In this document: piece after piece, positions 8,586-64,000 of the stretch
Numbering within the stretch: position 1 is the first letter of the stretch
Layout: every line of letters begins with the position of its first letter
Source of the DNA: Eukaryota sp. TZLM1-RC
Taxonomy: Eukaryota; Protista; Metamonada: BaSk clade
Direction: 5' to 3'
Assembly: GCA_040285825.1 (NCBI GenBank)
Contig: JAUPSS010000004.1
Coordinates: 1 to 64,000, forward strand
DNA: 64,000 nucleotides
The notes under the pieces: model-generated
Seen by the model: only the letters and a program-made list of their open reading frames with translations
What the model was told of the DNA's origin: nothing
Databases searched by the model: none
Made by a program: the position numbers and the translations under genes

Positions 8586-8630
<45 letters not shown>

Positions 8631-9540: not shown

Positions 9541-9574
<34 letters not shown>

Positions 9575-10416: not shown

Positions 10417-10447
<31 letters not shown>

Positions 10448-26985: not shown

Positions 26986-28532
26986 TAATATATACAAAAT
27001 CAATTGAAAATGTAATCATGAGTTTGTACTGATCAAGTAACACATAGCCAACATTACTCACACACAATTTCACACAAAGTTTGATCACAAATTGATCACA
27101 TCTAGTACATAAGGACTACATGCAACTCACCAAATCACACCAATGACCATTCAACCAATCAAACCAATGACTACTCACATGACCATAGCACGGACTTTAA
27201 CACCACAATTGTTATATTAATTGTCCCAAAATGGACTTTAAAGATTTGACCAATGATTGTAATAAACAACCATTGGTCAATATACGAAACTAGGAACTTC
27301 ATATGAGCCTCAGTAAATCGTATCAAAAACGATACTCTTACACTTACAGCAATTGTTTTATTAGTTTACAACATTCAATTGTATACTTTTTGATTTTTTA
27401 CTTTTTTTACAATTTAATGTTTAAAAATTAATACACTCAATTAATTCAAATATATACAAAATCATTTGAAAATGTAATCATGAGTTTGTACTGATCAAGT
27501 AACACATAGCCAACATTACTCACACACAATTTCACACAAAGTTTGATCACAAGTTGATCACATCTAGTACATAAGGACTACATGCAACTCACCAAATCAC
27601 ACCAATGACCATTCAACCAATTAAACCAATGACTACTCAAATGACCATAACAAGGACTTTAACACCACAATTGTTATATTAATTGTCCCAAAATGGACTT
27701 TAAAGATTTGACAATTTTCACTCAATTAATTCAAATATATACAAAATCAATTGAAAATGTAATCATGAGTTTGTACTGATCAAGTAACACATAGCCAACA
27801 TTACTCACACACAATTTCACACAAAGTTTGGTCACAAGTTGATCACATCTAGTACATAAAGACTACATGCAACTCATCTAATCATACCAATGACCATTCA
27901 ACCAATCAAACCAATGACTACTCACATGAACATAGCACGGACTTTGTCACCAAAATTGTTATATTAATTGTCCCAAAATGGACTTTAAAGATTTGACCAA
28001 TGATTGTAATAAACAACCATTGGTCAATATACGAAACTAGGAACTTCATATGAGCCTCAGTAAATCGTATCAAAAACGATACTCTTACACTTACAGCAAT
28101 GGTTTTATTAGTTTGCAACATTCAATTGTATACTTTTTGATTTTTTACTATTTTTACAATTTAATGTTTAAAAATTAATAAACTCCATTAATTCAAATAT
28201 ATACAAAATCAATTGAAAATGTAATCATGAGTTTGTACTGATCAAGTAACACATAGCCAACATTACTAACACACAATTTCACACAAAGTTTGATCACAAG
28301 TTGATCACATCTAGTACATAAGGACTACATGCAACTCACCTCATCACACCAATGACCATTCAACCAATCACACCAATGACTACTCAAATGACCATAGCAC
28401 GGACTTTAACACCACAGTTGTTATATTAATTGTCCCAAAATGGACTTTAAAGATTTGACCAATGATTGTAATAAACAACCATTGGTCAATATACGAAACT
28501 AGGAACTTCATATGAGCCTCAGTAAATCGTAT

Positions 28533-29210
28533 ACAGTAGACAGTCAATCTTCTTGTTTTTTGAAAGTCTTGCCTATTTCTCAAAATTTCACGTTCTCAGA
28601 TGATTGCTTTAAATACCTAATAAATCTGAGATTGCTTCAAGGAGAACAATTTGTGATATGTCCTTTGTGTGGTTATGGAGACCTAGGCTTAGATCACTCT
28701 TTTCAATGTAGAAAAGTCTCGAGAATGGTTACACAAAGACATAACGAAGTAAATAATTTTATTAACGAATTAAATAATTTTGAATCTGAAAAGGAATTTA
28801 AATTTGGTTTAAATAAGCAGTTACGTATTGATGGCTTTCAAACGTCAACCAAAATTGCTTTTGATGTTACCATAGTTGGAGGTTATGGTAATAATTGGAG
28901 TGATGCTTTTTCGAAAGCTTATTCTGATAAAATTGCAAAGTATTCAATTTTAAAAGAATTAAATTTAATTAACCAAATTGTTCCTCTCGTTTTTAGTGTT
29001 CATGGGGGTTTTTACACTAAAACAAAAGTACTGTTTGACCAATTTGGATGGAATGAGGTAGCAAATGAAATTAGTTGTATCATTTTGAAGAATAGCTTTA
29101 AATGCCACAGTGCATTTAATTATATACTTCAAAAGAAAAGAGAAGATCGTCAATGTTGGTAGGTAGTTGTTTTTTAGTATTCAAGTAGTTTCTTCTTAAT
29201 TTTCAATAAA
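28533..29210 (+). mobile_element. Family B 5'-truncated RLE retrotransposon (678 bp)
   Basis: 12-bp TSD AGTAAATCGTAT (28521-28532 / 29211-29222), AATAAA end, CPLC..H..C..RH..FDVTIVGG..K..KY. Confidence 0.93.
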
Positions 29211-29684
29211 AGTAAATCGTATCAAAAACGATACTCTTACACTTACAGCAATTGTTTTATTAGTTTACAACATTCAATTGTATACTTTTTGATTTTTTAC
29301 TTTTTTTACAATTTAATGTTTAAAAATTAATACACTCAATTGATTCAAATATATACAAAATCAATTGAAAATGTAATCATGAGTTTGTACTGATCAAGTA
29401 ACACATAGCCAACATTACTCACACACAATTTCACACAAAGTTTGATCACAAGTTGATCACATCTAGCACATAAGGACTACATGCAACTCACCTCATCACA
29501 CCAATGACCATTCAACCAATCACACCAATGACTACTCAAATGACCATAGCACGGACTTTAACACCACAGTTGTTATATTAATTGTCCCAAAATGGACTTT
29601 AAAGATTTGACCAATGATTGTAATAAACAACCATTGGTCAATATACGAAACTAGGAACTTCATATGAGCCTCAGTAAATCGTAT

Positions 29685-30362
29685 ACAGTAGACAGTCAAT
29701 CTTCTTGTTTTTTGAAAGTCTTGCCTATTTCTCAAAATTTCACGTTCTCAGATGATTGCTTTAAATACCTAATAAATCTGAGATTGCTTCAAGGAGAACA
29801 ATTTGTGATATGTCCTTTGTGTGGTTATGGAGACCTAGGCTTAGATCACTCTTTTCAATGTAGAAAAGTCTCGAGAATGGTTACACAAAGACATGACGAA
29901 GTAAATAATTTTATTAACGAATTAAATAATTTTGAATCTGAAAAGGAATTTAAATTTGGTTTAAATAAGCAGTTACGTATTGATGGCTTTCAAACGTCAA
30001 CCAAAATTGCTTTTGATGTTACCATAGTTGGAGGTTATGGTAATAATTGGAGTGATGCTTTTTCGAAAGCTTATTCTGATAAAATTGCAAAGTATTCAAT
30101 TTTAAAAGAATTAAATTTAATTAACCAAATTGTTCCTCTCGTTTTTAGTGTTCATGGGGGTTTTTACACTAAAACAAAAGTACTGTTTGACCAATTTGGA
30201 TGGAATGAGGTAGCAAATGAAATTAGTTGTATCATTTTGAAGAATAGCTTTAAATGCCACAGTGCATTTAATTATATACTTCAAAAGAAAAGAGAAGATC
30301 GTCAATGTTGGTAGGTAGTTGTTTTTTAGTATTCAAGTAGTTTCTTCTTAATTTTCAATAAA
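29685..30362 (+). mobile_element. Family B copy (678 bp), tandem duplicate of the previous one
   Basis: Same TSD (29673-29684 / 30363-30374) and same 5' junction; 1152-bp period. Confidence 0.93.
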
Positions 30363-32825
30363 AGTAAATCGTATCAAAAACGATACTCTTACACTTACAG
30401 CAATTGTTTTATTAGTTTACAACATTCAATTGTATACTTTTTGATTTTTTACTTTTTTTACAATTTAATGTTTAAAAATTAATACACTCAATTGATTCAA
30501 ATATATACAAAATCAATTGAAAATGTAATCATGAGTTTGTACTGATCAAGTAACACATAGCCAACATTACTCACACACAATTTCACACAAAGTTTGATCA
30601 CAAGTTGATCACATCTAGCACATAAGGACTACATGCAACTCACCTCATCACACCAATGACCATTCAACCAATCAAACCAATGACTACTCAAATGACCATA
30701 GCAAGGACTTTAACACCACAATTGTTATATTAATTGTCCCAAAATGGACTTTAAAGATTTGACCAATGATTGTAATAAACAACCATTGGCCAATATACGA
30801 AACTAGGAACTTCATATGAGCCTCAGTAAATCGTATCAAAAACGATACTCTTACACTTACAGCAATTGTTTTATTAGTTTACAACATTCAATTGTATACT
30901 TTTTGATTTTTTACTTTTTTTACATTTTAATGTTTAAAAATTAATACACTCAATTGATTCAAATATATACAAAATCAATTGAAAATGTAATCATGAGTTT
31001 GTACTGATCAAGTAACACATAGCCAACATTACTCACACACAATTTCACACAAAGTTTGATCACACGTTGATCACATCTAGTACATAAAGACTACATGCAA
31101 CTCACCTCATCACACCAATGACCATTCAACCAATCATACCAATGACTAATCAAATGACCATAGCACGGACTTTAACACCACAGTTGTTATATTAATTGTC
31201 CCAAAATGGACTTTAAAGATTTGACCAATGATTGTAATAAACAACCATTGGTCAATATACGAAACTAGGAACTTCATGTGAGCCTCAGTAAATCGTATCA
31301 AAAACGATACTCTTACACTTACAGCAATTGTTTTATTAGTTTACAACATTCAATTGTATACTTTTTGATTTTTTACTTTTTTTACAATTTAATGTTTAAA
31401 AATTAATACACTCAATTAATTCAAATATATACAAAATCATTTGAAAATGTAATCATGAGTTTGTACTGATCAAGTAACACATAGCCAACATTACTCACAC
31501 ACAATTTCACACAAAGTTTGATCACAAGTTGATCACATCTAGTACATAAGGACTACATGCAACTCACCAAGTCACACCAATGACCATTCAACCAATCAAA
31601 CCAATGACTACTCAAATGACCATAGCAAGGACTTTAACACCACAATTGCTATATTAATTGTCCCAAAATGGACTTTAAAGATTTGACCAATGATTGTAAT
31701 AAACAACCATTGGTCAATATACGAAACTAGGAACTTCATGTGAGCCTCAGTAAATCGTATCAAAAACGATACTCTTACACTTACAGCAATTGTTTTATTA
31801 GTTTACAACATTCAATTGTATACTTTTTGATTTTTTACTTTTTTTACAATTTAATGTTTAAAAATTAATACACTCAATTAATTCAAATATATACAAAATC
31901 ATTTGAAAATGTAATCATGAGTTTGTACTGATCAAGTAACACATAGCCAACATTACTCACACACAATTTCACACAAAGTTTGATCACAAGTTGATCACAT
32001 CTAGTACATAAGGACTACATGCAACTCACCAAATCACACCAATGACCATTCAACCAATCAAACCATTGACTACTCAAATGACCATAGCACGGACTTTAAC
32101 ACCACAGTTGTTATATTAATTGTCCCAAAATGGACTTTAAAGATTTGACCAATGATTGTAATAAACAACCATTGGTCAATATACGAAACTAGGAACTTCA
32201 TATGAGCCTCAGTAAATCGTATCAAAAACGATACTCTTACACTTACAGCAATTGTTTTATTAGTTTACAACATTCAATTGTATACTTTTTGATTTTTTAC
32301 TTTTTTTAAACATTATTCGCAAATTTGGAAATGAAGAAATTCAAAAAAGAATTGACACACTTATGGAATGTAAAGTACCATTCTCAATGAACAATTCCAT
32401 ATTAAATTCTGACATGGCTGATCGGTAATGGCTGTCCGTATTAATTGATCTACCTGCTAGAGTCATTGAATTTACAAGTAATTCTTCCTAGAATATAGTA
32501 ACTACTGCGGAATAACTTTAAGTATGGAAAATTGGTCAGAAACTGTCTGATGGATCGACTTTCAGTTTCACAATGCTTAGAGATTAGATGATTGATTGAT
32601 CGATTATTAAAGATTGCCTTGGGGGAGCATTCAACTGTTGTAATTTATTTGGTTGTTAAGTCACCCAAAATTTGTTATTTTGTCGCTTTCGTTCAAAATA
32701 ATAATTTTTAAAATTGTTGAGTAATTTCATCACCATTTCCATCAGCAAAGCGAATCCCAATTGAAATGGAGATTGAAGAACTTGAAAGATTTTGTCATCA
32801 AATAGCAAAAAGATATATAGATTTA

Positions 32826-40123: not shown

Positions 40124-41870
40124 ACTTTTCAATTTCAATGATTCCAAACAAATTGTTTTGTTCATTTTATTCAAAAAATATCATGTATCTACCCCTATCT
40201 TTTTTTGATAGATGATTTCGTATTGTTCTTATTCTGGCCTAATGATTTTTGATGTCTCCTTTGATCAACCACTGTTATAGGGAACATGGTAATTGACAAA
40301 GTACGTGTTTGTATCCATTCTTATTAATACAATACTGATGTAAACATGGATTTCAACAGTCACAATTCTTTGCCAACAAGACACTTCTGGTCTCCAAATG
40401 AATGAAGGATTCTACAAATCATGTACATTTATTAGAACACGATATAATATGGTCGTTGGTAACAATAAGAAGGAGAAAAAAAATACGATTTACTCAGGCT
40501 CATATGAAGTTCCTAGTTTCGTATATTGACCAATGGTTGTTTATTACAATCATTGGTCAAATCTTTAAAGTCCATTTTGGGACAATTATTATAACAATTG
40601 TGGTGTTAAAGGCCGTGCTTTGATCATTTGATTAGTCATTGGTACGATTGTTGATTGGTCATTAGGTGAGTTGCATGTAGTCTTTATGTACTAGATGTGA
40701 TCAAATTGTGATCAAACTTTGTGTGAAATTGTGTGTGAATAATGTTGGCTATGTGTTACTTGGTCAATACATACTCATGATTACATTTTCAATTGATTTT
40801 ATATATATTTGAATCAATTGAGCTTAATTAATTTTTAAACATTAAATTGCAAGAATAATAAAAAAACAAAAAGTATACAATTGAATGTTGCAAACTAATA
40901 AAACCATTGCTGTAAGTGTAAGAGTATCGTTTTTGATACGATTTACTGAGGCTCATATGAAGTTCCTAGTTTCGTATATTGACCAATGGTTGTTTATTAC
41001 AATCATTGGTCAAATCTTTAAAGTCCATTTTGGGACAATTAATATAACAATTGTGGTGTTAAAGTCCGTGCTATGGTCATTTGAGTAGTCATTGGTATGA
41101 TTGGTTGAATGGTCATTGGTATGATTAGATGAGTTGCATGTAGTCCTTATGTACTAGATGTGATCAACTTGTGATCAAACTTTGTGTGAAATTGTGTGTC
41201 AGTAGTGTTGGCTATGTGTTACTTGATCAGTACAAACTCATGATTACATTTTCAATTGATTTTGTATATATTTGAATTAATTGAGTGTATTAATTTTTAA
41301 ACATTAAATTGTAAAAATAGTAAAAAATCAAAAAGTATACAATTGAATGTGGCAAACTAATAAAACCATTGCTGTAAGTGTAAGAGTATCGTTTTTGATA
41401 CGATTTACTGAGGCTCATATGAAGTTCCTAGTTTCGTATATTGACCAATGGTTGTTTATTACAATCATTGGTCAAATCTTTAAAGTCCATTTTGGGACAA
41501 TTAATATAACAATTGTGGTGTTAAAGTCCGTGCTATGGTCATTTGAGTAGTCATTGGTATGATTGGTTGAATGATCAGTGGTTTGATTAGGTGATTTGCA
41601 TGTAGTCTTTATGTACTAGATGTGATCAACTTGTGATCAAACTTTGTGTGAAATTGGGTGTGAATAATGTTGGCTATGTGTTACTTGATCAGTACAAACT
41701 CATGATTACATTTTCAATTGATTATATATATTTGAATTAATTGAGTTTATTAATTTTTAAACAATAAATTGTAAAAATAGTAAAAAAATCAAAAAGTATA
41801 CAGATGAATGTTGCAAACTAATAAAACCATTGCTGTAAGTGTAAGAGTATCGTTTTTGATACGATTTACT

Positions 41871-42411
41871 TTTATTGAAAATTAAGAAGAAACTACTTGA
41901 ACACTAAAAAAAATTACCTACCAACATTGACGATCTTCTCTTTTCTTTTGAAGAATATAATTAAAAGCACTGGACATTTAAAGCTATTCTTCAAAATGAT
42001 ACAACTAATTTCATCTGCTACCTCATTCCATCCAAATTGGACAAACAGTATTTTTGTTTTAGTGTAAAAACCCCCATGAACACTAAAACCAGAGGAACAA
42101 TTTGGTGAATTAAATTTAATTCTTTTAAAATTGAATATTTTGCAAGTTTATCAGAATAAGCTTTCGAAAAAGCATCACTCCAATTATTACCATAACCTCC
42201 CAAAATCAAAAGCAATTTTAGTTGACGTTTGAAAGCCATCAACACGTAACTGCTTATTTAAACCGAATTTAAATTCCTTTTCAGATTCAAAATTATTTAA
42301 TTCGTTAATAAAATTATTTACTTCGTCATGTCTTTGTGTAACCATTCTTGAGACTTTTCTACAATGAAACGAGTGATCTAAGCCAAGGTCTCCATAACCA
42401 CACAAAGGAAT
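41871..42411 (-). mobile_element. Family B copy (~550-bp class, frameshifted)
   Basis: TSD ATACGATTTACT 41859-41870 / 42412-42423. Confidence 0.92.
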
Positions 42412-43813
42412 ATACGATTTACTGAGGCTCATATGAAGTTCCTAGTTTCGTATATTGACCAATGGTTGTTTATTACAATCATTGGTCAAATCTTTAAAGT
42501 CCATTTTGGGACAATTAATATAACAATTGTGGTGTTAAAGTGACGTGCTATGATCATTTGAGTAGTCATTGGTATGATTGGTTGAATGGTCATTGGTATG
42601 ATTTGGTGAGTTGCATGTAGTCTTTATGTACTAGATGTGATCAAATTGTGATCAAACTTTGTGGGAAATTGTGTGTGAGTAATGTTGGCTATGTGTTACT
42701 TGGTTAAAACATACTCATGATTACATTTTCAATTGATTTTGTATATATTTGAATTAATTGAGTTTATTAATTTTTAAACATTAAATTGTAAAAATAGTGA
42801 AAAAATCAAAAAGTATACAGATGAATGTTGCAAACTAATGAAACCATTGTTGTAAGTGTAAGAGTATCGTTTTTGATACGATTTACTGAGGCTCATATGA
42901 AGTTCCTAGTTTCGTATATTGACCAATGGTTGTTTATTACAATCATTGGTCAAATCTTTAAAGTCCATTTTGGGACAATTAATATAACAATTGTGGTGTT
43001 AAAGTGACGTGCTATGATCATTTGAGTAGTCATTGGTATGATTGGTTGAATGGTCATTGGTATGATTTGGTGAGTTGCATGTAGTCTTTATGTACTAGAT
43101 GTGATCAAATTGTGATCAAACTTTGTGGGAAATTGTGTGTGAGTAATGTTGGCTATGTGTTACTTGGTTAAAACATACTCATGATTACATTTTCAATTGA
43201 TTTTGTATATATTTGAATTAATTGAGTTTATTAATTTTTAAACATTAAATTGTAAAAATAGTGAAAAATCAAAAAGTATACAGATGAATGTTGCAAACTA
43301 ATGAAACCATTGTTGTAAGTGTAAGAGTATCGTTTTTGATACGATTTACTGAGGCTCATATGAAGTTCCTAGTTTTCGTATATTGACCAATGGTTGTTTA
43401 TTACAATCATTGGTCAAATCTTTAAAGTCCATTTTGGGACAATTAATATAACAATTGTGGTGTTAAAGTGACGTGCTATGATCATTTGAGTAGTCATTGG
43501 TATGATTGGTTGAATGGTCATTGGTATGATTTGGTGAGTTGCATGTAGTCTTTATGTACTAGATGTGATCAAATTGTGATCAAACTTTGTGTGAAATTGG
43601 GTGTGAATAATGTTGGCTATGTGTTACTTGATCAGTACAAACTCATGATTACATTTTCAATTGATTATATATATTTGAATTAATTGAGTTTATTAATTTT
43701 TAAACAATAAATTGTAAAAATAGTAAAAAAATCAAAAAGTATACAGATGAATGTTGCAAACTAATAAAACCATTGCTGTAAGTGTTAGAGTATCGTTTTT
43801 GATACGATTTACT

Positions 43814-46405: not shown

Positions 46406-49400
46406 ATACGATTTACTGAGGCTCATATGAAGTTCCTAGTTTCGTATATTGACCAATGGTTGTTTAATAACAATCATTGGTCAAATCTTTAAAGTCCATT
46501 TTGGGACACTTATTATAACAATTGTGGTGTTAAAGTCCGTGCTATGGTCATTTGAGTAGTCATTGGTATGATTAGTTCAATGGTCATTGGTATGATTAGA
46601 TGAGTTGCATGTAGTCTTTATGTACTAGATGTGATCAACTTGTGATCAAACTTTGTGTGAAATTGTGTGTGAGTAATGTTGGCTATGTGTTACTTGGTCA
46701 ATACATACTCATGATTGCTTTTTCAATTGATTTTGTATATATTTGAATTAATTGAGTTTATTAATTTTTAAATATTAAATTGTAAAAAAAGTAAAAAATC
46801 AAAAAGTATACAATTGAATGTTGTAAACTAATAGAACTATTGCTGTAAGTGTAAGAGTATCGTTTTTGATACGATTTACTGGGGCTCATATGAAGTTCCT
46901 AGTTTCGTTTATTGACCAATGGTTGTTTAATAACAATCATTGGTCAAATCTTTAAAGTCCATTTTGGGACACTTAATATAACAATTGTGGTGTTAAAGAC
47001 CGTGCTATGGTCATTTGAGTAGTCATTGGTATGATTAGTTCAATGGTCATTGGTATGATTAGATGAGTTGCATGTAGTCATTATGTACTAGATGTGATCA
47101 ACTTGTGATCAAACTTTGTGTGAAATTGTGTGTGAGTAATGTTGGCTATGTGTTACTTGGTCAATACATACTCATGATTACATTTTCAATTGATTTTGTA
47201 TATATTTGAATTAATTGAGTTTATTAATTTTTAAATATTAAATTGTAAAAAAAGTAAAAAATCAAAAAGTATACAATTGAATGTTGTAAACTAATAAGAC
47301 CATTGCTGTAAGTGTAAGAGTATCATTTTTGATACGATTTACTGGGGCTCATATGAAGTTCCTAGTTTCGTTTATTGACCAATGGGTTGTTTATTACAAT
47401 CATTTATCAAATGTTCAAAGTCCATTTTGGGACAATTAAATATAACAATTGTGGTGTTAAAGTCCGTGCTATGGTCATTTGAGTAGTCATTGGTGTGATT
47501 AGTTCAATGGTCATTGGTATGATTAGATGAGTTGCATGTAGTCTTTATGTACTAGATGTGATCAACTTGTGATCAAACTTTGTGTGAAATTGTGTGTGAG
47601 TAATGTTGGCTATGTGTTACTTGGTCAATACATACTCATGATTGCTTTTTCAATTGATTTTGTATATATTTGAATTAATTGAGTTTATTAATTTTTAAAT
47701 ATTAAATTGTAAAAAAAGTAAAAATCAAAAAGTATACAATTGAATGTTGTAAACTAATAGAACTATTGCTGTAAGTGTAAGAGTATCGTTTTTGATACGA
47801 TTTACTGGGGCTCATATGAAGTTCCTAGTTTCGTTTATTGACCAATGGTTGTTTAATAACAATCATTGGTCAAATCTTTAAAGTCCATTTTGGGACACTT
47901 AATATAACAATTGTGGTGTTAAAGACCGTGCTATGGTCATTTGAGTAGTCATTGGTATGATTAGTTCAATGGTCATTGGTATGATTAGATGAGTTGCATG
48001 TAGTCTTTATGTACTAGATGTGATCAACTTGTGATCAAACTTTGTGTGAAATTGTGTGTGAGTAATGTTGGCTATGTGTTACTTGGTCAATACATACTCA
48101 TGATTACATTTTCAATTGATTTTGTATATATTTGAATTAATTGAGTTTATTAATTTTTAAATATTAAATTGTAAAAAAAGTAAAAAATCAAAAAGTATAC
48201 AATTGAATGTTGTAAACTAATAAAACTATTGCTGTAAGTGTAAGAGTATCGTTTTTGATACGATTTACTGGGGCTCATATGAAGTTCCTAGTTTCGTTTA
48301 TTGACCAATGGGTTGTTTATTACAATCATTTATCAAATGTTCAAAGTCCATTTTGGGACAATTAAATATAACAATTGTGGTGTTAAAGACCGTGCTATGG
48401 TCATTTGAGTAGTCATTGGTATGATTAGTTCAATGGTCATTGGTATGATTAGATGAGTTGCATGTAGTCCTTATGTACTAGATGTGATCAACTTGTGATC
48501 GAACTTTGTGTGAAATTGTCTGTGAATAATGTTGGCTATGTGTTACTTGATCAGTACAAACTCATGATTACATTTTCAATTGAATTTGTATATATTTGAA
48601 TTAATTGAGTTTATTAATTTTTAAATATTAAATTGTAAAAAAAGTAAAAAATCAAAAAGTATACAATTGAATGTTGTAAACTAATAAAACTATTGCTGTA
48701 AGTGTAAGAGTATCGTTTTTGATACGATTTACTGGGGCTCATATGAAGTTCCTAGTTTCGTTTATTGACCAATGGTTGTTTAATAACAATCATTGGTCAA
48801 ATCTTTAAAGTCCATTTTGGGACACTTAATATAACAATTGTGGTGTTAAAGACCGTGCTATGGTCATTTGAGTAGTCATTGGTATGATTAGTTCAATGGT
48901 CATTGGTATGATTAGATGAGTTGCATGTAGTCTTTATGTACTAGATGTGATCAACTTGTGATCAAACTTTGTGTGAAATTGTGTGTGAGTAATGTTGGCT
49001 ATGTGTTACTTGGTCAATACATACTCATGATTACATTTTCAATTGATTTTGTATATATTTGAATTAATTGAGTTTATTAATTTTTAAATATTAAATTGTA
49101 AAAAGTAAAAAAATCAAAAAGTATACAATTGAATGTTGTAAACTAATAAAACTATTGCTGTAAGTGTAAGAGTATCGTTTTTGATACGATTTACTGGGGC
49201 TCATATGAAGTTCCTAGTTTCGTTTATTGACCAATGGGTTGTTTATTACAATCATTTATCAAATGTTCAAAGTCCATTTTGGGACAATTAAATATAACAA
49301 TTGTGGTGTTAAAGACCGTGCTATGGTCATTTGAGTAGTCATTGGTATGATTAGTTCAATGGTCATTGGTATGATTAGATGAGTTGCATGTAGTCTTTAT

Positions 49401-51050
49401 GTACTAGATGTGATCAACTTGTGATCAAACTTTGTGTGAAATTGTGTGTGAGTAATGTTGGCTATGTGTTACTTGGTCAATACATACTCTTGATTACATT
49501 TTCAATTGATTTTGTATATATTTGAATTAATTGAGTGTATTAATTTTTAAACATTAAATTGTAAAAAAAGTAAAAAATCAAAAAGTATACAATTGAATGT
49601 TGTAAACTAATAAAACCATTGCTGTAAGTGTAAGAGTATCGTTTTTGATACGATTTACTGAGGCTCATATGAAGTTCCTAGTTTCGTATATTGACCAATG
49701 GTTGTTTATTAACAATCATTGGTCAAATCTTTAAAGTCCATTTTGGGACACTTATTATAACAATTGTGGTGTTAAAGACCGTGCTATGGTCATTTGAGTA
49801 GTCATTGGTATGATTAGTTCAATGGTCATTGGTATGATTAGATGAGTTGCATGTAGTCCTTATGTACTAGATGTGATCAACTTGTGATCAAACTTTGTGT
49901 GAAATTGGGTGTGAGTAATGTTGACTATGTGTTACTTGGTCAATACAAACTCTTGATTACATTTTCAATTGATTTTGTATATATTTGAATTAATTGAGTG
50001 TATTAATTTTTAAACATTAAATTGTAAAAAAAGTAAAAAATCAAAAAGTATACAATTGAATGTTGTAAACTAATAAAACCATTGCTGTAAGTGTAAGAGT
50101 ATCGTTTTTGATACGATTTACTGAGGCTCATATGAAGTTCCTAGTTTCGTATATTGACCAATGGTTGTTTATTAACAATCATTGGTCAAATCTTTAAAGT
50201 CCATTTTGGGACACTTATTATAACAATTGTGGTGTTAAAGACCGTGCTATGGTCATTTGAGTAGTCATTGGTATGATTAGTTCAATGGTCATTGGTATGA
50301 TTAGATGAGTTGCATGTAGTCTTTATGTACTAGATGTGATCAACTTGTGATCAAACTTTGTGTGAAATTGTGTGTGAGTAATGTTTGCTATGTGTTACTT
50401 GGTCAATACATACTCATGATTGCATTTTCAATTGATTTTGTATATATTTGAATTAATTGAGTTTATTAATTTTTAAACATTAAATTGTAAAAATAGTAAA
50501 AAAATCAAAAAGTATACAGATGAATGTTGCAAACTAATAAAACCATTGCTGTAAGTGTAAGAGTATCGTTTTTGATACGATTTACTGAGGCTCATATGAA
50601 GTTCCTAGTTTCGTATATTGACCAATGGTTGTTTATTAACAATCATTGGTCAAATCTTTAAAGTCCATTTTGGGACATTTATTATAACAATTGTGGTGTT
50701 AAAGACCGTGCTATGGTCATTTGAGTAGTCATTGGTATGATTAGTTCAATGGTCATTGGTATGATTAGATGAGTTGCATGTAGTCTTTATGTACTAGATG
50801 TGATCAACTTGTGATCAAGCTTTGTGTGAAATTGTGTGTGAGTAATGTTTGCTATGTGTTACTTGGTCAATACATACTCATGATTGCATTTTCAATTGAT
50901 TTTGTATATATTTGAATTAATTGAGTTTATTAATTTTTAAACATTAAATTGTAAAAATAGTAAAAAAATCAAAAAGTATACAGATGAATGTTGCAAACTA
51001 ATAAGACCATTGCTGTAAGTGTAAGAGTATCGTTTTTGATACGATTTACT

Positions 51051-52113
51051 TTTATTGAAAATTAAAAAAAACTACTTGAACACTAAAAAAAATTACCTAC
51101 CAACATTGACGATCTTCTCTTTTCTTTTGAAGAATATAATTAAAAGCACTGTGACATTTAAAGCTATTCTTCAAAATGATACAACTAATTTCATCTGCTA
51201 CCTCATTCCATCCAAATTGGACAAACAGTATTTTTGTTTTAGTGTAAAAACCCTCATGAACACTAAAAACGAGAGGAACAATTTGGTGAATTAAATTTAA
51301 TTCTTTTAAAATTGAATATTTTGCAATTTTATCAGAATAAGCTTTCGAAAAAGCATCACTCCAATTATTACCATAACCTCCAACTATGGTAAAATCAAAA
51401 GCAATTTTAGTTGACGTTTGAAAGCCATCAACACGTAACTGCCTATTTAAACCAAATTTAAATTCCTTTTCAGATTCAAAATTATTTAATTCGTTAATAA
51501 AATTATTTACTTCGTCATGTCTTTGTGTAACCATTCTTGAGACTTTTCTACATTGAAACAAGTGATCTAAGCCTAGGTCTCCATGACCACACAAAGGACA
51601 TATCACAAATTGTTCTCCTTGAAGCAATCTCAGATTTATTAGGTATTTAAAGCAATCATCTGAGAACGTGAAATTTTGAGAAATAGGCAAAACTTTCAAA
51701 CAACAAGATGATTGAGTGCCACAATTTGAAATAAATTGTAGTCGTTCACATTCTGATAGTTTTTCTTTCAAACGACTCAATTTTTCCTTATAAAATAAAT
51801 GAGTGATTTGACGTTGGCAAATTTTAATTCGTTTGTCCCAGATTGAGTCAAAACCAGCAAAAGAAGGTGATAAAGCTGATAGTAAAACCCTATACTGATC
51901 ACTTGGAATTAAATTTGTTAAATCAAGATCACGTACAGCCAAGTATACAGAAACTGAATAGCAAATATGTGCAACTTGGCCCAGATGGAGAAACCCTAAT
52001 CCACCCAAAGAATGAGGCAAATAAATTAAATCTAAATTATTTGATTCTTCCAATCCTATTAAGTTGAAATAAGCAACAAATTCTGAAACCCAAAGATGAA
52101 AACCCATTCTGGT
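51051..52113 (-). mobile_element. Family B longest copy (1063 bp)
   Basis: TSD 51039-51050 / 52114-52125. Uninterrupted frame from LP...GGLG (post-RT) through CCHC and RLE. Confidence 0.93.
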
Positions 52114-55100
52114 ATACGATTTACTGAGGCTCATATAAAGTTCCTAGTTTCGTATATTGACCAATGGTTGTTTATTACAATCATTGGTCAAATCTTTAAA
52201 GTCCATTTTGGGACAATTAATATAACAATTGTGGTGTTAAAGTCCGTGCTATGGTCATTTGATTAGTCATTGGCATGATTGGTTGAATGGTCATTGGTAT
52301 GATTAGATGAGTTGCATGTAGTCTTTATGTACTAGATGTGATCAACTTGTGATCAAACTTTGTGTGAAATTGTGTGTGAGTAATGTTGGCTATGTGTTAC
52401 TTGGTCAATACATACTCATGATTGCTTTTTCAATTGATTTTGTATATATTTGAATTAATTGAGTTTATTAATTTTTAAATATTAAATTGTAAAAAAAGTA
52501 AAAAATCAAAAAGTATACAATTGAATGTTGTAAACTAAAAGAACTATTGCTGTAAGTGTAAGAGTATCGTTTTTGATACGATTTACTGGGGCTCATATGA
52601 AGTTCCTAGTTTCGTTTATTGACCAATGGTTGTTTAATAACAATCATTGGTCAAATCTTTAAAGTCCATTTTGGGACAATTAATATAACAATTGTGGTGT
52701 TAAAGTCCGTGCTATGGTCATTTGAGTAGTCATTGGTATGATTAGTTCAATGGTCATTGGTATGATTGGGTGAGTTGCATGTAGTCTTTATGTACTAGAT
52801 GTGATCAACTTGTGATCAAATTTTGTGTGAAATTGTGTGTGAATAATGTTGGCTATGTGTTACTTGATCAGTACAAACTCATGATTACATTTTCAATTGA
52901 TTTTGTATATATTTGAATTAATTGAGTTTATTAATTTTTAAACAATAAATTGTAAAAATAGTAAAAAATCAAAAAGTATACAATTGAATGTTGTAAACTA
53001 ATAAAACCATTGCTGTAAGTGTAAGAGTATCGTTTTTGATACGGTTTACTGAGGCTCATATGAAGTTCCTAGTTTCGTTTATTGACCAATGGGTTGTTTA
53101 TTACAATCATTTATCAAATGTTTAAAGTCCATTTTGGGACAATTAAATATAACAATTGTGGTGTTAAAGACCGTGCTATGGTCATTTGAGTAGTCATTGG
53201 TATGATTAGTTCAATGGTCATTGGTATGATTAGATGAGTTGCATGTAGTCTTTATGTACTAGATGTGATCAACTTGTGATCAAACTTTGTGTGAAATTGT
53301 GTGTGAGTAATGTTGGCTATGTGTTACTTGGTCAATACATACTCATGATTGCTTTTTCAATTGATTTTGTATATATTTGAATTAATTGAGTTTATTAATT
53401 TTTAAATATTAAATTGTAAAAAAAGTAAAAAATCAAAAAGTATACAATTGAATGTTGTAAACTAATAAAACAATTGCTGTAAGTGTAAGAGTATCGTTTT
53501 TGATACGATTTACTGGGGCTCATATGAAGTTCCTAGTTTCGTTTATTGACCAATGGTAGTTTAATAACAATCATTGGTCAAATCTTTAAAGTCCATTTTG
53601 GGACACTTATTATAACAATTGTGGTGTTAAAGTCCGTGCTATGGTCATTTGAGTAGTCATTGGTATGATTAGTTCAATGGTCATTGGTATGATTGGGTGA
53701 GTTGCATGTAGTCTTTATGTACTAGATGTGATCAACTTGTGATCAAATTTTGTGTGAAATTGTGTGTGAATAATGTTGGCTATGTGTTACTTGATCAGTA
53801 CAAACTCATGATTACATTTTCAATTGATTTTGTATAAATTTGAATTAATTGAGTTTATTAATTTTTAAACAATAAATTGTAAAAATAGTAAAAAATCAAA
53901 AAGTATACAATTGAATGTTGTAAACTAATAAAACCATTGCTGTAAGTGTAAGAGTATCGTTTTTGATACGGTTTACTGAGGCTCATATGAAATTCCTAGT
54001 TTCGTATATTGACCAATGGTTGTTAATAACAATCATTGGTCAAATCTTTAAAGTCCATTTTGGGACACTTATTATAACAATTGTGGTGTTAAAGACCGTG
54101 CTATGGTCATTTGAGTAGTCATTGGTATGATTAGTTCAATGGTCATTGGTATGATTAGATGAGTTGCATGTAGTCTTTATGTACTAGATGTGATCAACTT
54201 GTGATCAAACTTTGTGTGAAATTGTGTGTGAGTAATGTTGGCTATGTGTTACTTGGTCAATACATACTCATGATTGCTTTTTCAATTGATTTTGTATATA
54301 TTTGAATTAATTGAGTTTATTAATTTTTAAATATTAAATTGTAAAAAGTAAAAAATCAAAAAGTATACAATTGAATGTTGTAAACTAATAAAACAATTGC
54401 TGTAAGTGTAAGAGTATCGTTTTTGATACGATTTACTGGGGCTCATATGAAGTTCCTAGTTTCGTATATTGACCAATGGTTGTTTATTACAATCATTGGT
54501 CAAATCTTTAAAGTCCATTTTGGGACAATTAATATAACAATTGTGGTGTTAAAGTCCGTGCTATGGTCATTTGAGTAGTCATTGGTATGATTGGTTGAAT
54601 GGTCATTGGTGTGATTAGATGAGTTGCATGTAGTCTTTATGTACTAGATGTGATCAACTTGTGATCAAACTTTGTGTGAAATTGTGTGTGAGTAATGTTG
54701 GCTATGTGTTACTTGATCAGTACAAACTCGTGATTACATTTTCAATTGATTTTGTATATATTTGAATTAATTGAGTTATTAATTTTTAAACATTAAATTG
54801 TAAAAATAGTAAAAAATCAAAAAGTATACAATTGAATGTTGCAAACTAATATAACCATTGCTGTAAGTGTAAGAGTATCGTTTTTGATACGATTTACTGA
54901 GGCTCATATGAAGTTCCTAGTTTCGTATATTGACCAATGGTTGTTTATTACAATCATTGGTCAAATCTTTAAAGTCCATTTTGGGACAATTAATATAACA
55001 ATTGTGGTGTTAAAGTCCGTGCTATGGTCATTTGAGTAGTCATTGGTTTGATTGGTTGAATGGTCATTGGTATGATTAGATGAGTTGCATGTAGTCTTTA

Positions 55101-58100
55101 TGTACTAGATGTGATCAACTTGTGATCAAACTTTGTGTGAAATTGTGTGTGAGTAATGTTGGCTATGTGTTACTTGGTCAATACATACTCATGATTGCTT
55201 TTTCAATTGATTTTGTATATATTTGAATTAATTGAGTTTATTAATTTTTAAATATTAAATTGTAAAAAAAGTAAAAAATCAAAAAGTATACAATTGAATG
55301 TTGTAAACTAATAAAACAATTGCTGTAAGTGTAAGAGTATCGTTTTTGATACGATTTACTGGGGCTCATATGAAGTTCCTAGTTTCGTATATTGACCAAT
55401 GGTAGTTTAATAACAATCATTGGTCAAATCTTTAAAGTCCATTTTGGGACACTTATTATAACAATTGTGGTGTTAAAGTCCGTGCTATGGTCATTTGAGT
55501 AGTCATTGGTATGATTAGTTCAATGGTCATTGGTATGATTGGGTGAGTTGCATTAGTCTTTATGTACTAGATGTGATCAACTTGTGATCAAATTTTGTGT
55601 GAAATTGTGTGTGAATAATGTTGGCTATGTGTTACTTGATCAGTACAAACTCATGATTACATTTTCAATTGATTTTGTATAAATTTGAATTAATTGAGTT
55701 TATTAATTTTTAAACAATAAATTGTAAAAATAGTAAAAAATCAAAAAGTATACAATTGAATGTTGTAAACTAATAAAACCATTGCTGTAAGTGTAAGAGT
55801 TTCGTTTTTGATACGGTTTACTGAGGCTCATATGAAGTTCCTAGTTTCGTATATTGACCAATGGTTGTTAATAACAATCATTGGTCAAATCTTTAAAGTC
55901 CATTTTGGGACACTTATTATAACAATTGTGGTGTTAAAGACCGTGCTATGGTCATTTGAGTAGTCATTGGTATGATTAGTTCAATGGTCATTGGTATGAT
56001 TAGATGAGTTGCATGTAGTCTTTATGTACTAGATGTGATCAACTTGTGATCAAACTTTGTGTGAAATTGTGTGTGAGTAATGTTGGCTATGTGTTACTTG
56101 GTCAATACATACTCATGATTGCTTTTTCAATTGATTTTGTATATATTTGAATTAATTGAGTTTATTAATTTTTAAACAATAAATTGTAAAAATAGTAAAA
56201 AATCAAAAAGTATACAATTGAATGTTGTAAACTAATAAAACCATTGCTGTAAGTGTAAGAGTATCGTTTTTGATACGATTTACTGGGGCTCATATGAAGT
56301 TCCTAGTTTCGTTTATTGACCAATGGTTGTTTAATAACAATCATTGGTCAAATCTTTAAAGTCCATTCTGGGACACTTATTATAACAGTTGTGGTGTTGA
56401 AGTCCGTGCTATGGTCATTTGAGTAGTCATTGGTATGATTAGTTCAATGGTCATTGGTATGATTAGATGAGTTGCATGTAGTCTTTATGTACTAGATGTG
56501 ATCAACTTGTGATCAAACTTTGTGTGAAATTGTGTGTGAGTAATGTTGGCTATGTGTTACTTGGTCAATACATACTCATGATTGCTTTTTCAATTGATTT
56601 TGTATATATTTGAATTAATTGAGTTTATTAATTTTTAAACAATAAATTGTAAAAATAGTAAAAAATCAAAAAGTATACAATTGAATGTTGTAAACTAATA
56701 AAACCATTGCTGTAAGTGTAAGAGTATCGTTTTTGATACGATTTACTGGGGCTCATATGAAGTTCCTAGTTTCGTTTATTGACCAATGGTTGTTTAATAA
56801 CAATCATTGGTCAAATCTTTAAAGTCCATTCTGGGACACTTATTATAACAGTTGTGGTGTTGAAGTCCGTGCTATGGTCATTTGAGTAGTCATTGGTATG
56901 ATTAGTTCAATGGTCATTGGTATGATTAGATGAGTTGCATGTAGTCTTTATGTACTAGATGTGATCAACTTGTGATCAAACTTTGTGTGAAATTGTGTGT
57001 GAGTAATGTTGGCTATGTGTTACTTGGTCAATACATACTCATGATTACATTTTCAATTGATTTTGTATATATTTGAATTAATTGAGTTTATTAATTTTTA
57101 AACAATAAATTGTAAAAATAGTAAAAAATCAAAAAGTATACAATTGAATGTTGTTAACTAATAAAACCATTGCTGTAAGTGTAAGAGTATCATTTTTGAT
57201 ACGGTTTACTGAGGCTCATATGAAGTTCCTAGTTTCGTATATTGACCAATGGTTGTTTAATAACAATCATTGGTCAAATCTTTAAAGTCCATTTTGGGAC
57301 ACTGATTATAACAATTGTGGTGTTAAAGTCCGTGCTATGGTCATTTGAGTAGTCATTGGTATGATTAGTTCAATGGTCATTGGTATGATTAGATGAGTTG
57401 CATGTAGTCTTTATGTACTAGATGTGATCAACTTGTGATCAAACTTTGTGTGAAATTGTGTGTGAGTAATGTTGGCTATGTGTTACTTGGTCAATACATA
57501 CTCATGATTGCTTTTTCAATTGATTTTGTATGTATTTGAATTAATTGAGTTTATTAATTTTTAAATATTAAATTGTAAAAAAAGTAAAAAATCAAAAAGT
57601 ATACAATTGAATGTTGTAAACTAATAGAACTATTGCTGTAAGTGTAAGAGTATCGTTTTTGATACGGTTTATTGAGGCTCATATGAAGTTCCTAGTTTCG
57701 TATATTGACCAATGGTTGTTTAATAACAATCATTGGTCAAATCTTTAAAGTCCATTTTGGGACACTTATTATAACAATTGTGGTGTTAAAGTCCGTGCTA
57801 TGGTCATTTGAGTAGTCATTGGTATGATTAGTTCAATGGTCATTGGTATGATTAGATGAGTTGCATGTAGTCTTTATGTACTAGATGTGATCAACTTGTG
57901 ATCAAACTTTGTGTGAAATTGTGTGTGAGTAATGTTGGCTATGTGTTACTTGGTCAATACATACTCATGATTGCTTTTTCAATTGATTTTGTATATATTT
58001 GAATTAATTGAGTTTATTAATTTTTAAACATTAAATTGTAAAAAAGTAAAAATCAAAAGTATACAATTGAATGTTGTAAACTAATAGAACTATTGCTGTA

Positions 58101-60625
58101 AGTGTAAGAGTATCGTTTTTGATACGGTTTACTGAGGCTCATATGAAGTTCCTAGTTTCGTATATTGACCAATGGTTGTTTAATAACAATCATTGGTCAA
58201 ATCTTTAAAGTCCATTTTGGGACACTTATTATAACAATTGTGGTGTTAAAGTCCGTGCTATGGTCATTTGAGTAGTCATTGGTATGATTAGTTCAATGGT
58301 CATTGGTATGATTAGATGAGTTGCATGTAGTCTTTATGTACTAGATGTGATCAACTTGTGATCAAACTTTGTGTGAAATTGTGTGTGAGTAATGTTGGCT
58401 ATGTGTTACTTGGTCAATACATACTCATGATTGCTTTTTCAATTGATTTTGTATATATTTGAATTAATTGAGTTTATTAATTTTTAAATATTAAATTGTA
58501 AAAAAAGTAAAAAATCAAAAAGTATACAATTGAATGTTGTAAACTAATAGAACTATTGCTGTAAGTGTAAGAGTATCGTTTTTGATACGGTTTACTGAGG
58601 CTCATATGAAGTTCCTAGTTTCGTATATTGACCAATGGTTGTTATAACAATCATTGGTCAAATCTTTAAAGTCCATTTTGGGACACTTATTATAACAATT
58701 GTGGTGTTAAAGTCCGTGCTATGGTCATTTGAGTAGTCATTGGTATGATTAGTTCAATGGTCATTGGTATGATTAGATGAGTTGCATGTAGTCTTTATGT
58801 ACTAGATGTGATCAACTTGTGATCAAACTTTGTGTGAAATTGTGTGTGAGTAATGTTGGCTATGTGTTACTTGGTCAATACATACTCATGATTGCTTTCA
58901 ATTGATTTTGTATATATTTGAATTAATTGAGTTTATTAATTTTTAAATATTAAATTGTAAAAAAGTAAAAATCAAAAGTATACAATTGAATGTTGTAAAC
59001 TAATAGAACTATTGCTGTAAGTGTAAGAGTATCGTTTTTGATACGATTTACTGGGGCTCATATGAAGTTCCTAGTTTCGTTTATTGACCAATGGTTGTTT
59101 AATAACAATCATTGGTCAAATCTTTAAAGTCCATTTTGGGACAATTAATATAACAATTGTGGTGTTAAAGTGACGTGCTATGGTCATTTGAGTAGTCATT
59201 GGTATGATTAGTTCAATGGTCATTTGTATGATTGGGTGAGTTGCATGTAGTCTTTATGTACTAGATGTGATCAACTTGTGATCAAATTTTGTGTGAAATT
59301 GTGTGTGAGTAATGTTGGCTATGTGTTACTTGGTCAATACATACTCATGATTGCATTTTCAATTGATTTTGTATATATTTGAATTAATTGAGTTTATTAA
59401 TTTTTAAATATTAAATTGTAAAAAAAGTAAAAAATCAAAAAGTATACAATTGAATGTTGTAAACTAATAAAACTATTGCTGTCAGTGTAAGAGTATCGTT
59501 TTTGATACGATTTACTGGGGCTCATATGAAGTTCCTAGTTTCGTTTATTGACCAATGGTTGTTTATTACAATCATTGGTCAAATCTTTAAAGTCCATTTT
59601 GGGACAATTATTATAACAATTGTGGTGTTAAAGTCCGTGCTATGATCATTTGAGTAGTCATTGGTATGATTAGTTCAATGGTCATTGGTATGATTAGATG
59701 AGTTGCATGTAGTCTTTATGTACTAGATGTGATCAACTTGTGATCAAACTTTGTGTGAAATTGTGTGTGAGTAATGTTGGCTATGTGTTACTTGGTCAAT
59801 ACATACTCATGATTGCTTTTTCAATTGATTTTGTATATATTTGAATTAATTGAGTTTATTAATTTTTAAATATTAAATTGTAAAAAAAGTAAAAAATCAA
59901 AAAGTATACAATTGAATGTTGTAAACTAATAGAACTATTGCTGTAAGTGTAAGAGTATCGTTTTTGATACGATTTACTGGGGCTCATATGAAGTTCCTAG
60001 TTTCGTTTATTGACCAATGGTTGTTTAATAACAATCATTGGTCAAATCTTTAAAGTCCATTTTGGGACAATTAATATAACAATTGTGGTGTTAAAGTGAC
60101 GTGCTATGGTCATTTGAGTAGTCATTGGTATGATTAGTTCAATGGTCATTTGTATGATTGGGTGAGTTGCATGTAGTCTTTATGTACTAGATGTGATCAA
60201 CTTGTGATCAAATTTTGTGTGAAATTGTGTGTGAGTAATGTTGGCTATGTGTTACTTGGTCAATACATACTCATGATTGCATTTTCAATTGATTTTGTAT
60301 ATATTTGAATTAATTGAGTTTATTAATTTTTAAATATTAAATTGTAAAAAAAGTAAAAAATCAAAAAGTATACAATTGAATGTTGTAAACTAATAAAACT
60401 ATTGCTGTCAGTGTAAGAGTATCGTTTTTGATACGATTTACTGGGGCTCATATGAAGTTCCTAGTTTCGTTTATTGACCAATGGTTGTTTATTACAATCA
60501 TTGGTCAAATCTTTAAAGTCCATTTTGGGACAATTATTATAACAATTGTGGTGTTAAAGTCCGTGCTATGATCATTTGAGTAGTCATTGGTATGATTGGT
60601 TGAATGGTCATTGGTAAGATTAGGT

Positions 60626-61492
60626 CTTTATTGAATTTCTAAAAGAAAAAGAACGGAAAAACTATAAAAGTAAATAAAAAAAACATAAACTACCAAAACC
60701 TACGAGCTTCATGAATTCTTTGAAGAATAGAATTAAATGCTTGATTACATCTAAAACTATTTTTCTGAATTATACAACTAATTTCACTGCAAAGCTCAAT
60801 CCAACCAAAACGTTTAAATGTTTCTTTTTGTTTCTTTAGTTTTCTTGTACCAATCCCCATGGACATTAAAAACTAAAGGAACAATTTCTGAAATTAAATT
60901 GTATTCTTTTAGAATACTGTATTTCCTTATTTTAGTAGCAAATGCTTGAGAGTAAGCATCTTGCCATTTATTTCCAAAACCACCAACTATTGTAATATCA
61001 AACGCAATTTTGGTTTTGGGATCAAATAAATCTAAATAAAATTTTTTTAAACCAATTTCAAATTCCTTTTCCTTTTCATATTTGGAGATATTTAATAAAT
61101 AATCTCTAACTTCATCATGTCTGTTTTTAATGCATCGTGAAACACCTTTACATTGAAAACTATGGTCTAAACCGAGATTTGTGTAACCACATCTGGGACA
61201 CTGATGATAAAAATTATTAAAAATTAATCGAAGATTCAGAAAATAAGACATGAATTCATCAGAAAAAGTGAAATTTGCATTAAAAGGTAATGCATTCAAA
61301 AAACTACCTGAAAGTTCAGAACAATTAGCTTCTAATTGTAATTTTTCCATATCAGACATTGTTTTTTGAAGAGAATTCATTTCATTTTTATAAAATTCCT
61401 TTGTTAATTTTGATTGAGAAATTATTATGTCTTTATCCCAAATAGACTCATATCCTACAAATTGTGGATTTAAAGTAGAATAGATGATTATA
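60626..61492 (-). mobile_element. Family C 5'-truncated RLE retrotransposon (867 bp) at a second site in the repeat
   Basis: 13-bp TSD GGTAAGATTAGGT (60613-60625 / 61493-61505), AATAAAG end, CPRC..H..C..RHD..FDITIVGG; protein paralogous to family B. Confidence 0.9.
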
Positions 61493-61787
61493 GGTAAGAT
61501 TAGGTGAGTTGCATGTAGTCCTTATGCACTAGATGTGATCAACCTGTGATCAAACTTTGTGTGAAATTGTGTGTGAATAATGTTGGCTATGTGTTACTTG
61601 ATCAGTACAAACTCGTGATTACATTTTCAATTGATTTTGTATATATTTGAATTAATTGAGTTTATTAATTTTTAAACAATAAATTGTAAAAATAGTAAAA
61701 AAAAATCAAAAAGTATACAGATGAATGTTGCAAACTAATGAAACCATTGCTGTAAGTGTAAGAGTATCGTTTTTGATACGATTTACT

Positions 61788-62337
61788 TTTATTGAAAATT
61801 AAAAAAAACTACTTGAACACTAAAAAAAATTACCTACCAACATTGACGATCTTCTCTTTTCTTTTGAAGAATATAATTAAAAGCACTGTGACATTTAAAG
61901 CTATTCTTCAAAATGATACAACTAATTTCATCTGCTACCTCATTCCATCCAAATTGGTCAAACAGTATTTTTGTTTTAGTGTAAAAACCTCCATGAACAC
62001 TAAAAACGAGAGGAACAATTTGGTTAATTAAATTTAATTCTTTTAAAATTGAATACTTTGCAATTTTATCAGAATAAGCTTTCGAAAAAGCATCACTCCA
62101 ATTATTACCATAACCTCCAACTATGGTAACATCAAAAGCAATTTTAGTTGACGTTTGAAAGCCATCAACACGTAACTGCTTATTTAAACCGAATTTAAAT
62201 TCCTTTTCAGATTCAAAATTATTTAATTCGTTAATAAAATTATTTACTTCGTCATGTCTTTGTGTAACCATTCTTGAGACTTTTCTACAATGAAACGAGT
62301 GATCTAAGCCAAGGTCTCCATAACCACACAAAGGAAT
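61788..62337 (-). mobile_element. Family B copy (550 bp)
   Basis: TSD 61776-61787 / 62338-62349. Confidence 0.92.
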
Positions 62338-62811
62338 ATACGATTTACTGAGGCTCATATAAAGTTCCTAGTTTCGTATATTGACCAATGGTTGTTTATT
62401 ACAATCATTGGTCAAATCTTTAAAGTCCATTTTGGGACAATTAATATAACAATTGTGGTGTTAAAGTCCGTGCTATGGTCATTTGAGTAGTCATTGGTAT
62501 GATTGGTTGAATGGTCATTGGTATGATTAGGTGAGTTGCATGTAGTCTTTATGTACTAGATGTGATCAACTTGTGATCAAACTTTGTGTGAAATTGGGTG
62601 TGAGTAATGTTGGCTATGTGTTACTTGGTCAATACAAACTCATGATTACATTTTCAATTGATTTTGTATAAATTTGAATTAATTGAGTTATTAATTTTTA
62701 AACATTAAATTGTAAAAATAGTAAAAAAATCAAAAAGTATACAGATGAATGTTGCAAACTAATAAGACCATTGCTGTAAGTGTAAGAGTATTGTTTTTGA
62801 TACGATTTACT

Positions 62812-63360
62812 TTTATTGAAAATTAAAAAAAACTACTTGAACACTAAAAAAAATACCTACCAACATTGACGATCTTCTCTTCTCTTTTGAAGAATATAAT
62901 TAAAAGCACTGTGACATTTAAAGCTATTCTTCAAAATGATACAACTAATTTCATCTGCTACCTCATTCAATCCAAATTGGACAAACAGTATTTTTGTTTT
63001 AGTGTAAAAACCCCCATGAACACTAAAAACGAGAGGAACAATTTGGTGAATTAAATTTAATTCTTTTAAAATTGAATATTTTGCAATTTTATCAGAATAA
63101 GCTTTCGAAAAAGCATCACTCCAATTATTACCATAACCTCCAACTATGGTAAAATCAAAAGCAATTTTAGTTGACGTTTAAAAGCCATCAACACGTAACT
63201 GCCTATTTAAACCAAATTTAAATTCCTTTTCAGATTCAAAATTATTTAATTCGTTAATAAAATTATTTACTTCGTCATGTCTTTGTGTAACCATTCTTGA
63301 GACTTTTCTACATTGAAACAAGTGATCTAAGCCTAGGTCTCCATAACCACACAAAGGAAT
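62812..63360 (-). mobile_element. Family B copy (~550 bp, premature stop)
   Basis: TSD 62800-62811 / 63361-63372. Confidence 0.92.
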
Positions 63361-63835
63361 ATACGATTTACTGAGGCTCATATAAAGTTCCTAGTTTCGT
63401 ATATTGACCAATGGTTGTTTATTACAATCATTGGTCAAATCTTTAAAGTCCATTTTGGGACAATTAATATAACAATTGTGGTGTTAAAGTCCGTGCTATG
63501 GTCATTTGAGTAGTCATTGGTATGATTGGTTGAATGGTCATTGGTATGATTAGGTGAGTTGCATGTAGTCTTTATGTACTAGATGTGATCAACTTGTGAT
63601 CAAACTTTGTGTGAAATTGGGTGTGAGTAATGTTGGCTATGTGTTACTTGGTCAATACAAACTCATGATTACATTTTCAATTGATTTTGTATAAATTTGA
63701 ATTAATTGAGTTTATTAATTTTTAAACATTAAATTGTAAAAATAGTAAAAAAATCAAAAAGTATACAGATGAATGTTGCAAACTAATAAGACCATTGCTG
63801 TAAGTGTAAGAGTATCGTTTTTGATACGATTTACT

Positions 63836-64000
63836 TTTATTGAAAATTAAAAAAAAACTACTTGAACACTAAAAAAAATTACCTACCAACATTGACGATC
63901 TTCTCTTTTCTTTTGAAGAATATAATTAAAAGCACTGTGACATTTAAAGCTATTCTTCAAAATGATACAACTAATTTCATCTGCTACCTCATTCCATCCA
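63836..64000 (-). mobile_element. Family B copy, 3' end only (cut by the window edge)
   Basis: Same 3' junction ATACGATTTACT|TTTATTG and same 3' UTR. Confidence 0.9.

Follow-up and report, generated by a model that had tools for sequence, protein, structure and literature searches.

The rRNA-targeting elements R2, R4, R5, R8 and R9 each carry one open reading frame (ORF) that combines a reverse transcriptase (RT), a CCHC motif and a restriction-like endonuclease (RLE), and they insert with precise 3′ and variable 5′ junctions. Members of the CRE clade (CRE1, SLACS, CZAR, MoTeR) combine N-terminal C2H2 fingers with RT, CCHC and RLE, generate target-site duplications (TSDs) and occupy tandem arrays in protists, the known targets being spliced-leader genes or telomeric repeats. 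Tandem-repeat-specific RLE elements are also represented by Genie 1, which is specific for a 771-bp tandem repeat in a metamonad (Giardia), and by Dong (Bombyx), which occupies repeats of the ribosomal DNA (rDNA) spacer; neither target repeat is, to our knowledge, known to be rRNA-derived. Here, we describe family B, a single-ORF, RLE-type retrotransposon without long terminal repeats (non-LTR) in the rDNA of strain TZLM1-RC, which we take to be the free-living metamonad Skoliomonas litria. The DNA analyzed (herein referred to as the window) is a 64,000-nt stretch of contig JAUPSS010000004.1 (assembly GCA_040285825.1), an rDNA region with 18S, 5.8S and 28S matches, all on the minus strand. B resembles the R2-type elements in its ORF, junctions and rRNA target, whereas it differs from them in a target 27 nt from the 28S 3′ end that is found mostly in spacer repeats, in its antisense orientation (found also in R5 and R9), in an RNase H placed before the RT, in about a quarter of events being off target, and in its metamonad host. 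It is like the CRE clade in domains, TSDs and tandem-array targets, and like Genie 1 and Dong in its tandem-repeat specificity. The closest precedent for the uptake of a gene-targeting element by a gene-derived satellite is Utopia/YURE, with YURE elements in U2_sat (PMC4640811); oomycete Utopia is reported in that paper to have its RNase H upstream of the RT. The target there is U2 snRNA and not 28S, whereas the satellite occupied by B consists of the rDNA spacer itself, in which most of the B copies lie. A term search of the TZLM1-RC genome paper (10.1101/2023.05.03.539051) returned no passage on rRNA repeats or B-type elements, and a literature search for 28S-derived spacer repeats or for the family B element found nothing relevant. 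The present analysis adds copies at off-target sites, a calculation of statistical power, the disrupted state of the 28S in the window and the direction of the target shift.

The window contains three arrays of a ~462-bp unit (table 1), which consists of the last 70 nt of 28S, a block present in every unit, and ~390 nt of spacer, with a perfect 15-bp hairpin just 3′ of the 28S end in each unit (z -5.6). At other loci the array follows complete 28S genes and lies upstream of the 5′ spacer and 18S that come next; it is therefore the rDNA intergenic spacer. Ten B copies lie in the window, antisense to the rRNA and with one identical 3′ junction, and the nine complete ones have the 12-bp TSD ATACGATTTACT on both sides. 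Inspection of junctions and TSDs thus bears out a preliminary description of this DNA on both counts, and also its placement of the target in the 28S-derived part of the unit, since the motif falls within the 70-nt 28S block of every unit, 27-39 nt short of where the Rfam LSU match ends. The same description called the genuine 28S end empty; the target there is indeed unoccupied, but this 28S is not an intact gene, because family D interrupts it and all that precedes it of an 18S is the 3′ part.

The complete B bodies measure 678 bp (two copies), 541-550 bp (six) and 1063 bp (one), the last of which comprises the terminal part of the RT region, an RHD motif, a CCHC knuckle, the RLE and a short 3′ untranslated region ending in AATAAA; the tenth copy is cut by the window edge. 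These three truncation classes had been taken to reflect at least three independent insertions, and three window insertions are confirmed. A single 5′ junction is common to the six ~550-bp copies, blocks of unit plus B are 95-99% identical to one another, and the units between B copies are 98.5% identical to each other as against 95-96% to other units. Copies within one array are alike despite different truncation points (99.3-100% in locus L005), and the 1063-bp copy of the window is paired at 99/97 with the one at 62800. On the strength of these shared junctions, block identities and within-array similarities, we conclude that the window copies derive from three insertions that were then amplified and homogenized with the array, whole blocks of unit plus B having spread within arrays after insertion; a count of ten insertions was accordingly rejected. 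Over all loci, the 18 in-array copies fall into nine junction classes with TSDs of about 9-12 bp. Endonuclease-only genes created by an in-frame ATG donated by the unit were considered and rejected, the ATG being in frame in 3/3 window classes and 0/5 elsewhere, and 3/8 is the chance expectation.

Table 1. Arrays, 28S rRNA copy and element copies in the window (64,000 nt)
Feature	Coordinates	Strand	TSD or target positions	Remarks
Left array	1..6549	-		14 unit sites immediately after the 28S end, none with B
28S rRNA copy (Rfam LSU match)	6550..10795	-	3′-end B target 6578-6589, empty	interrupted by family D
Family D	6976..7904	+	14-bp TSD, 6962-6975 and 7905-7918	antisense RLE fragment, 929 bp, inside 28S; 29% aa identity to B
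Middle array	26987..32344	-		same unit; contains both 678-bp B copies
B, 678-bp class	28533..29210	+	28521-28532 and 29211-29222	
B, 678-bp class	29685..30362	+	29673-29684 and 30363-30374	99.8% identical to 28533..29210
Right-hand array	40483..64000	+		~462-bp units; detached from any 28S gene in the window
B, ~550 class	41871..42411	-	TSD starts 41859, 42412	541 bp
B, ~550 class	43814..44362	-	TSD starts 43802, 44363	
B, ~550 class	44837..45379	-	TSD starts 44825, 45380	
B, ~550 class	45856..46405	-	TSD starts 45844, 46406	
B, 1063 bp	51051..52113	-	TSD starts 51039, 52114	
Family C	60626..61492	-	13-bp TSD, 60613-60625 and 61493-61505	sister of B (69% nt, 51-58% aa); in non-rRNA part of unit
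B, ~550 class	61788..62337	-	TSD starts 61776, 62338	
B, ~550 class	62812..63360	-		mosaic with internal alleles of the 1063-bp copy
B, cut by window edge	63836..64000	-	upstream target copy 63824-63835	

The window was compared with 17 S. litria loci and, in addition, with one locus (L017) of isolate TZLM3-RCL (herein RCL). The B protein of the window is 96% identical to predicted proteins of GCA_040285825.1, and loci with B were fetched through named members of the protein cluster that were listed outside the window's own array; this sample depends on gene calls, with 15 of the 29 cluster members listed. Loci independent of B were fetched through a spurious antisense-28S gene call, which yielded seven rDNA-anchored loci, six of them with complete, uninterrupted 28S genes and two of these six with additional 3′ fragments. 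Logan contigs of public runs cannot phase unique 28S sequence to a B junction (the shared block is 43 nt), and read depth was not taken as copy number. Run X4 (organism B) shows the unit with the variant letters of X1 at low depth and without family B; it was read as carry-over and left unused.

Across the window and the 17 S. litria loci, B occupies 0/9 true 28S ends and 18/209 unit sites (Fisher p=1), so that avoidance of true ends receives no statistical support. The window alone offers one true end among 62 sites, for which an empty end has P=0.84 when all 10 copies are counted (Fisher p=1); over all data and under uniform targeting, the probability of no true-end hit is 0.47 by copies and about 0.68 by events, and about 71 independent events would be needed for P<0.05, against the roughly nine seen. 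Units make up ~96% of the target sites sampled and outnumber real gene ends about 20 to 1, which is why B is seen in units: the empty true ends are what dilution predicts. B cannot tell a true 28S end from a unit, because around the nick the two are identical for 43 nt on the upstream side and 27 nt on the downstream side. The seven B-independent loci have B at 0/8 true ends and 0/87 unit sites, and units directly behind a 28S end carry B in 0/78 cases, the copies sitting in detached or rearranged stretches of array. Purging of disrupted genes may add to the concentration of B in units, with an effect below detection.

B was said to be specific for the 28S 3′-end motif and to occur only in the repeat copies. 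The second statement fails, as three TSD-flanked B copies lie at unrelated single-copy sites surrounded by ordinary genes, where neither a unit nor rDNA occurs within 10 kb (L002, TSD 12 bp; L007, 9-12 bp; L008, 13-14 bp), and the site specificity is hence not strict. These copies are 95-97.6% identical to in-array copies, and the arrays are equally close to each other. The L002 target matches 4/12 TSD bases, and all three copies begin C|AGYA in the element sense (TRCT^G on the rRNA-like strand; background 0.0023 per position). From this shared core we conclude that B has a strong but imperfect preference for the 28S 3′-end motif, with a short degenerate core TRCT^G; the preference claimed for the motif thus stands, and the sites outside the array keep the core. 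The off-target share is 3/12 independent events with a 3′ junction, or 4/13 including B2, both approximate in view of the gene-call sample. L006 holds a diverged B subfamily copy (86-89%) without visible TSD. At L007:10560-10800, two B 3′ ends stand in tandem with the same target bases after each, which suggests a second hit or a local duplication. Within the window, a unit variant with TACT^GGGG at the nick occurs at 46838-60431 in 16/51 empty units, never behind a B copy, and was not seen at the other loci; this may represent a resistant allele, though it is one amplified variant.

The B protein has the domain order RNase H, C2H2 fingers, RT, CCHC and RLE. In P0017, Pfam recognizes the RT domain (RVT_1, E 1.5e-18) and an RNase H but no Myb, and C2H2-like motifs are visible; the endonuclease region, in which Pfam finds nothing, has invariant C, C, H, C, RH-D, D, D and K columns in alignment A3. 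The best sequence matches in the PDB are R2 proteins (E 5e-8); a word search with the RT region retrieved only distant, unannotated proteins (24-31% identical). As is characteristic of RLE-type elements, B has a fixed 3′ end (after ...TACT^ on the rRNA-sense strand), variable 5′ truncations with up to ~6 extra bases, and TSDs of 9-14 bp. R2-clade elements insert at the R2 site, in sense and without a long TSD, whereas B lies antisense with its 9-14-bp TSD at 27 nt from the 28S end; being antisense, it cannot ride on an RNA polymerase I transcript. The full-length element called for by the preliminary description is approached by a near-full copy in L003 (~9900-13864), whose coding region includes RNase H, C2H2-like fingers and RT. 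This copy has lost 1 bp in each of two T runs, perhaps through sequencing error, and its ORF continues across these two deletions into the RLE part.

Within Skoliomonas, B falls in a clade of elements that target rDNA in antisense, and its relatives point to where its target came from. A large protein search retrieved family E of S. litria (57% identical) and proteins of RCL (33-40%). Family E and C′ (90% aa identity to C over 115 aa) end at an internal 28S site at nt ~900 (L018), and the closest RCL protein ends at the same nt-900 site inside a real 28S gene, antisense and with an 8-bp TSD (L017). In a tree of the endonuclease region (213 columns, midpoint root, with a C′ row that includes an out-of-frame stretch), E, B, B2, C and C′ form one clade (97/98) and C and C′ group at 100/100, and a clade of B, B2 and C is rejected (p-AU 1.4e-5). 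Since E, C′ and the closest RCL element all end at nt ~900 and the tree rejects B+B2+C, the simplest reading of the tree is that nt ~900 of 28S was the ancestral target and that B and C would have shifted separately into the amplified unit. The nick contexts are alike (GGCT^AG at nt ~900, TACT^GAG for B, AGRT^GAG for C), and small changes could therefore suffice for such shifts. A long family C copy with RNase H and RT lies at L001:8985-12775.

Taken together, we think it probable that dilution and passive amplification account for the distribution of B, together with a shift of target that opened a cheap niche to the element. By analogy with R2 and other RLE elements, the RLE would nick the rRNA-sense strand after TACT^, the exposed 3′-OH would prime reverse transcription of B, and a second nick 9-14 nt upstream would give rise to the TSD; unequal crossing-over and conversion would then multiply and homogenize the copies of unit plus B. 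On the topology of the tree, B may have taken up the 28S tail of the amplified unit and C its spacer part, both low-cost landing sites. Several points weigh against this reading: no intact B ORF was seen in the sampled loci, and none of the RNA runs contains B; concerted evolution resets the divergence of units, so that it cannot be dated whether the array or the target shift came first; the polarity of the shift depends on the 213-column tree, one frameshifted C′ copy and one RCL locus; and B was sampled through gene calls, not across the whole assembly. A less likely, though still credible, course of events has B targeting the 28S 3′ end before the array existed, the array expanding for reasons of its own (e.g., termination or 3′-end processing) and absorbing insertions by accident. 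The target is wholly 28S-derived and conserved, the RCL 28S end has the matching core TTTGCT^GAGG, and the hairpin behind the 28S end offers another cause for amplification. A diverged (~85%) B-like contig that uses the junction of B indicates that the target is old, yet it continues into unit sequence and not into 28S. The single RCL 28S end examined is empty, family C has shifted to the non-rRNA part of the unit, and no B-like protein of >40% identity was found in sister isolates, where 50% clustering can hide close ones; all of this speaks against a prior 3′-end targeter.

The off-target copies lend themselves to a further interpretation, namely that B is weakly specific (the TRCT^G core and a few contacts) and that its apparent specificity results from hundreds of perfect sites and passive amplification, with no adaptive retargeting. 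The off-target share and the poor match at L002 agree with it; however, 9/9 independent in-array events fell on one nucleotide of the 462-bp unit, and an element guided by a 5-nt core with the background given above should be mostly dispersed through the genome, and we therefore regard weak specificity as improbable. The proposal that the array is a decoy, its 28S end amplified under selection to soak up B and shield the rRNA genes, draws on the lineage-specific array (in the RCL rDNA unit of L017 the 28S end occurs once, with a 5S gene after it, and the ~247-bp spacer repeat there is unrelated), on the close clade of B being found only in S. litria, and on the absence of B from true 28S ends. 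Yet an absence of true-end hits is what chance would be expected to give (P 0.47-0.71), B is scarce in the very place in which a sink ought to act (0/78, as above), the internal 28S sites still hit by E, C′, D and other families are missing from the array, which gives no protection there, and the relatives point to B moving to the array and not to an array that answers B. We found no positive evidence for a decoy that absorbs a 3′-end targeter, the closest relatives targeting the internal site, and give the host decoy very little credence. It is similarly doubtful that selection has kept the S. litria array as a retrotransposon sink that draws B and C off the essential internal rRNA site, in a form of host–parasite truce. 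In the lineage comparison, RCL (one locus of one isolate) has neither the array nor a close B relative, and its closest element uses another site. Of the suggested harmless niche, the element's side survives: a low-cost safe harbor in the amplified unit is plausible, whereas its host-side counterpart is unsupported.

Family B shows how the amplification of a gene end can make an otherwise harmful rRNA target cheap; a decoy built by the host would, if true, be new, but lacks support. The families described here form a natural series of related RLE proteins (57-90% identical) with three targets (internal 28S, 28S tail and spacer), which makes the basis of target switching testable and is relevant to R2-type genome-writing tools.

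Other features of the rDNA deserve mention. The right-hand array begins (40483) with the first base of the 12-bp motif, after an A run and with no B sequence to its left. Unit breakpoints recur at ~60, ~87 and ~362 (L009:7470, 15959; L005:15449; L009:4643; L012:239; L015:7379), some with other elements or repeats attached. The rDNA units are spread over at least seven contigs (L010-L016), with inverted, truncated second copies in L010 and L011. Between the oppositely oriented middle and right-hand arrays lies an 8.1-kb island (32345-40482) with weak Pfam hits (CID, SWIM, Cas12f1-like TNB, EPL1).

A conserved stretch that lies upstream of the sarcin-ricin loop contains the TSD of family D. L005 has a stack of D copies, and rRNA context is absent around one diverged copy in L004. 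In RCL, L017:3962-4081 is the 5S gene in the rDNA spacer and L017:8399-10985 the nt-900 insert, with an 18S fragment between two element pieces. A family A element (11842-17372; RT ORF 13253-16204, RLE ORF 11927-12907) has 28S nt ~660 at its 5′ side and connects it to the 3′ part of an 18S; in L012, a copy 99.8% identical to it likewise stands before the 3′ part of an 18S. A Gypsy-type pol fragment (21084-23381; RT, RNase H, integrase) lies upstream of the 18S 5′ spacer, and the ~1.15-kb repeats next to it are found again upstream of other 18S genes.

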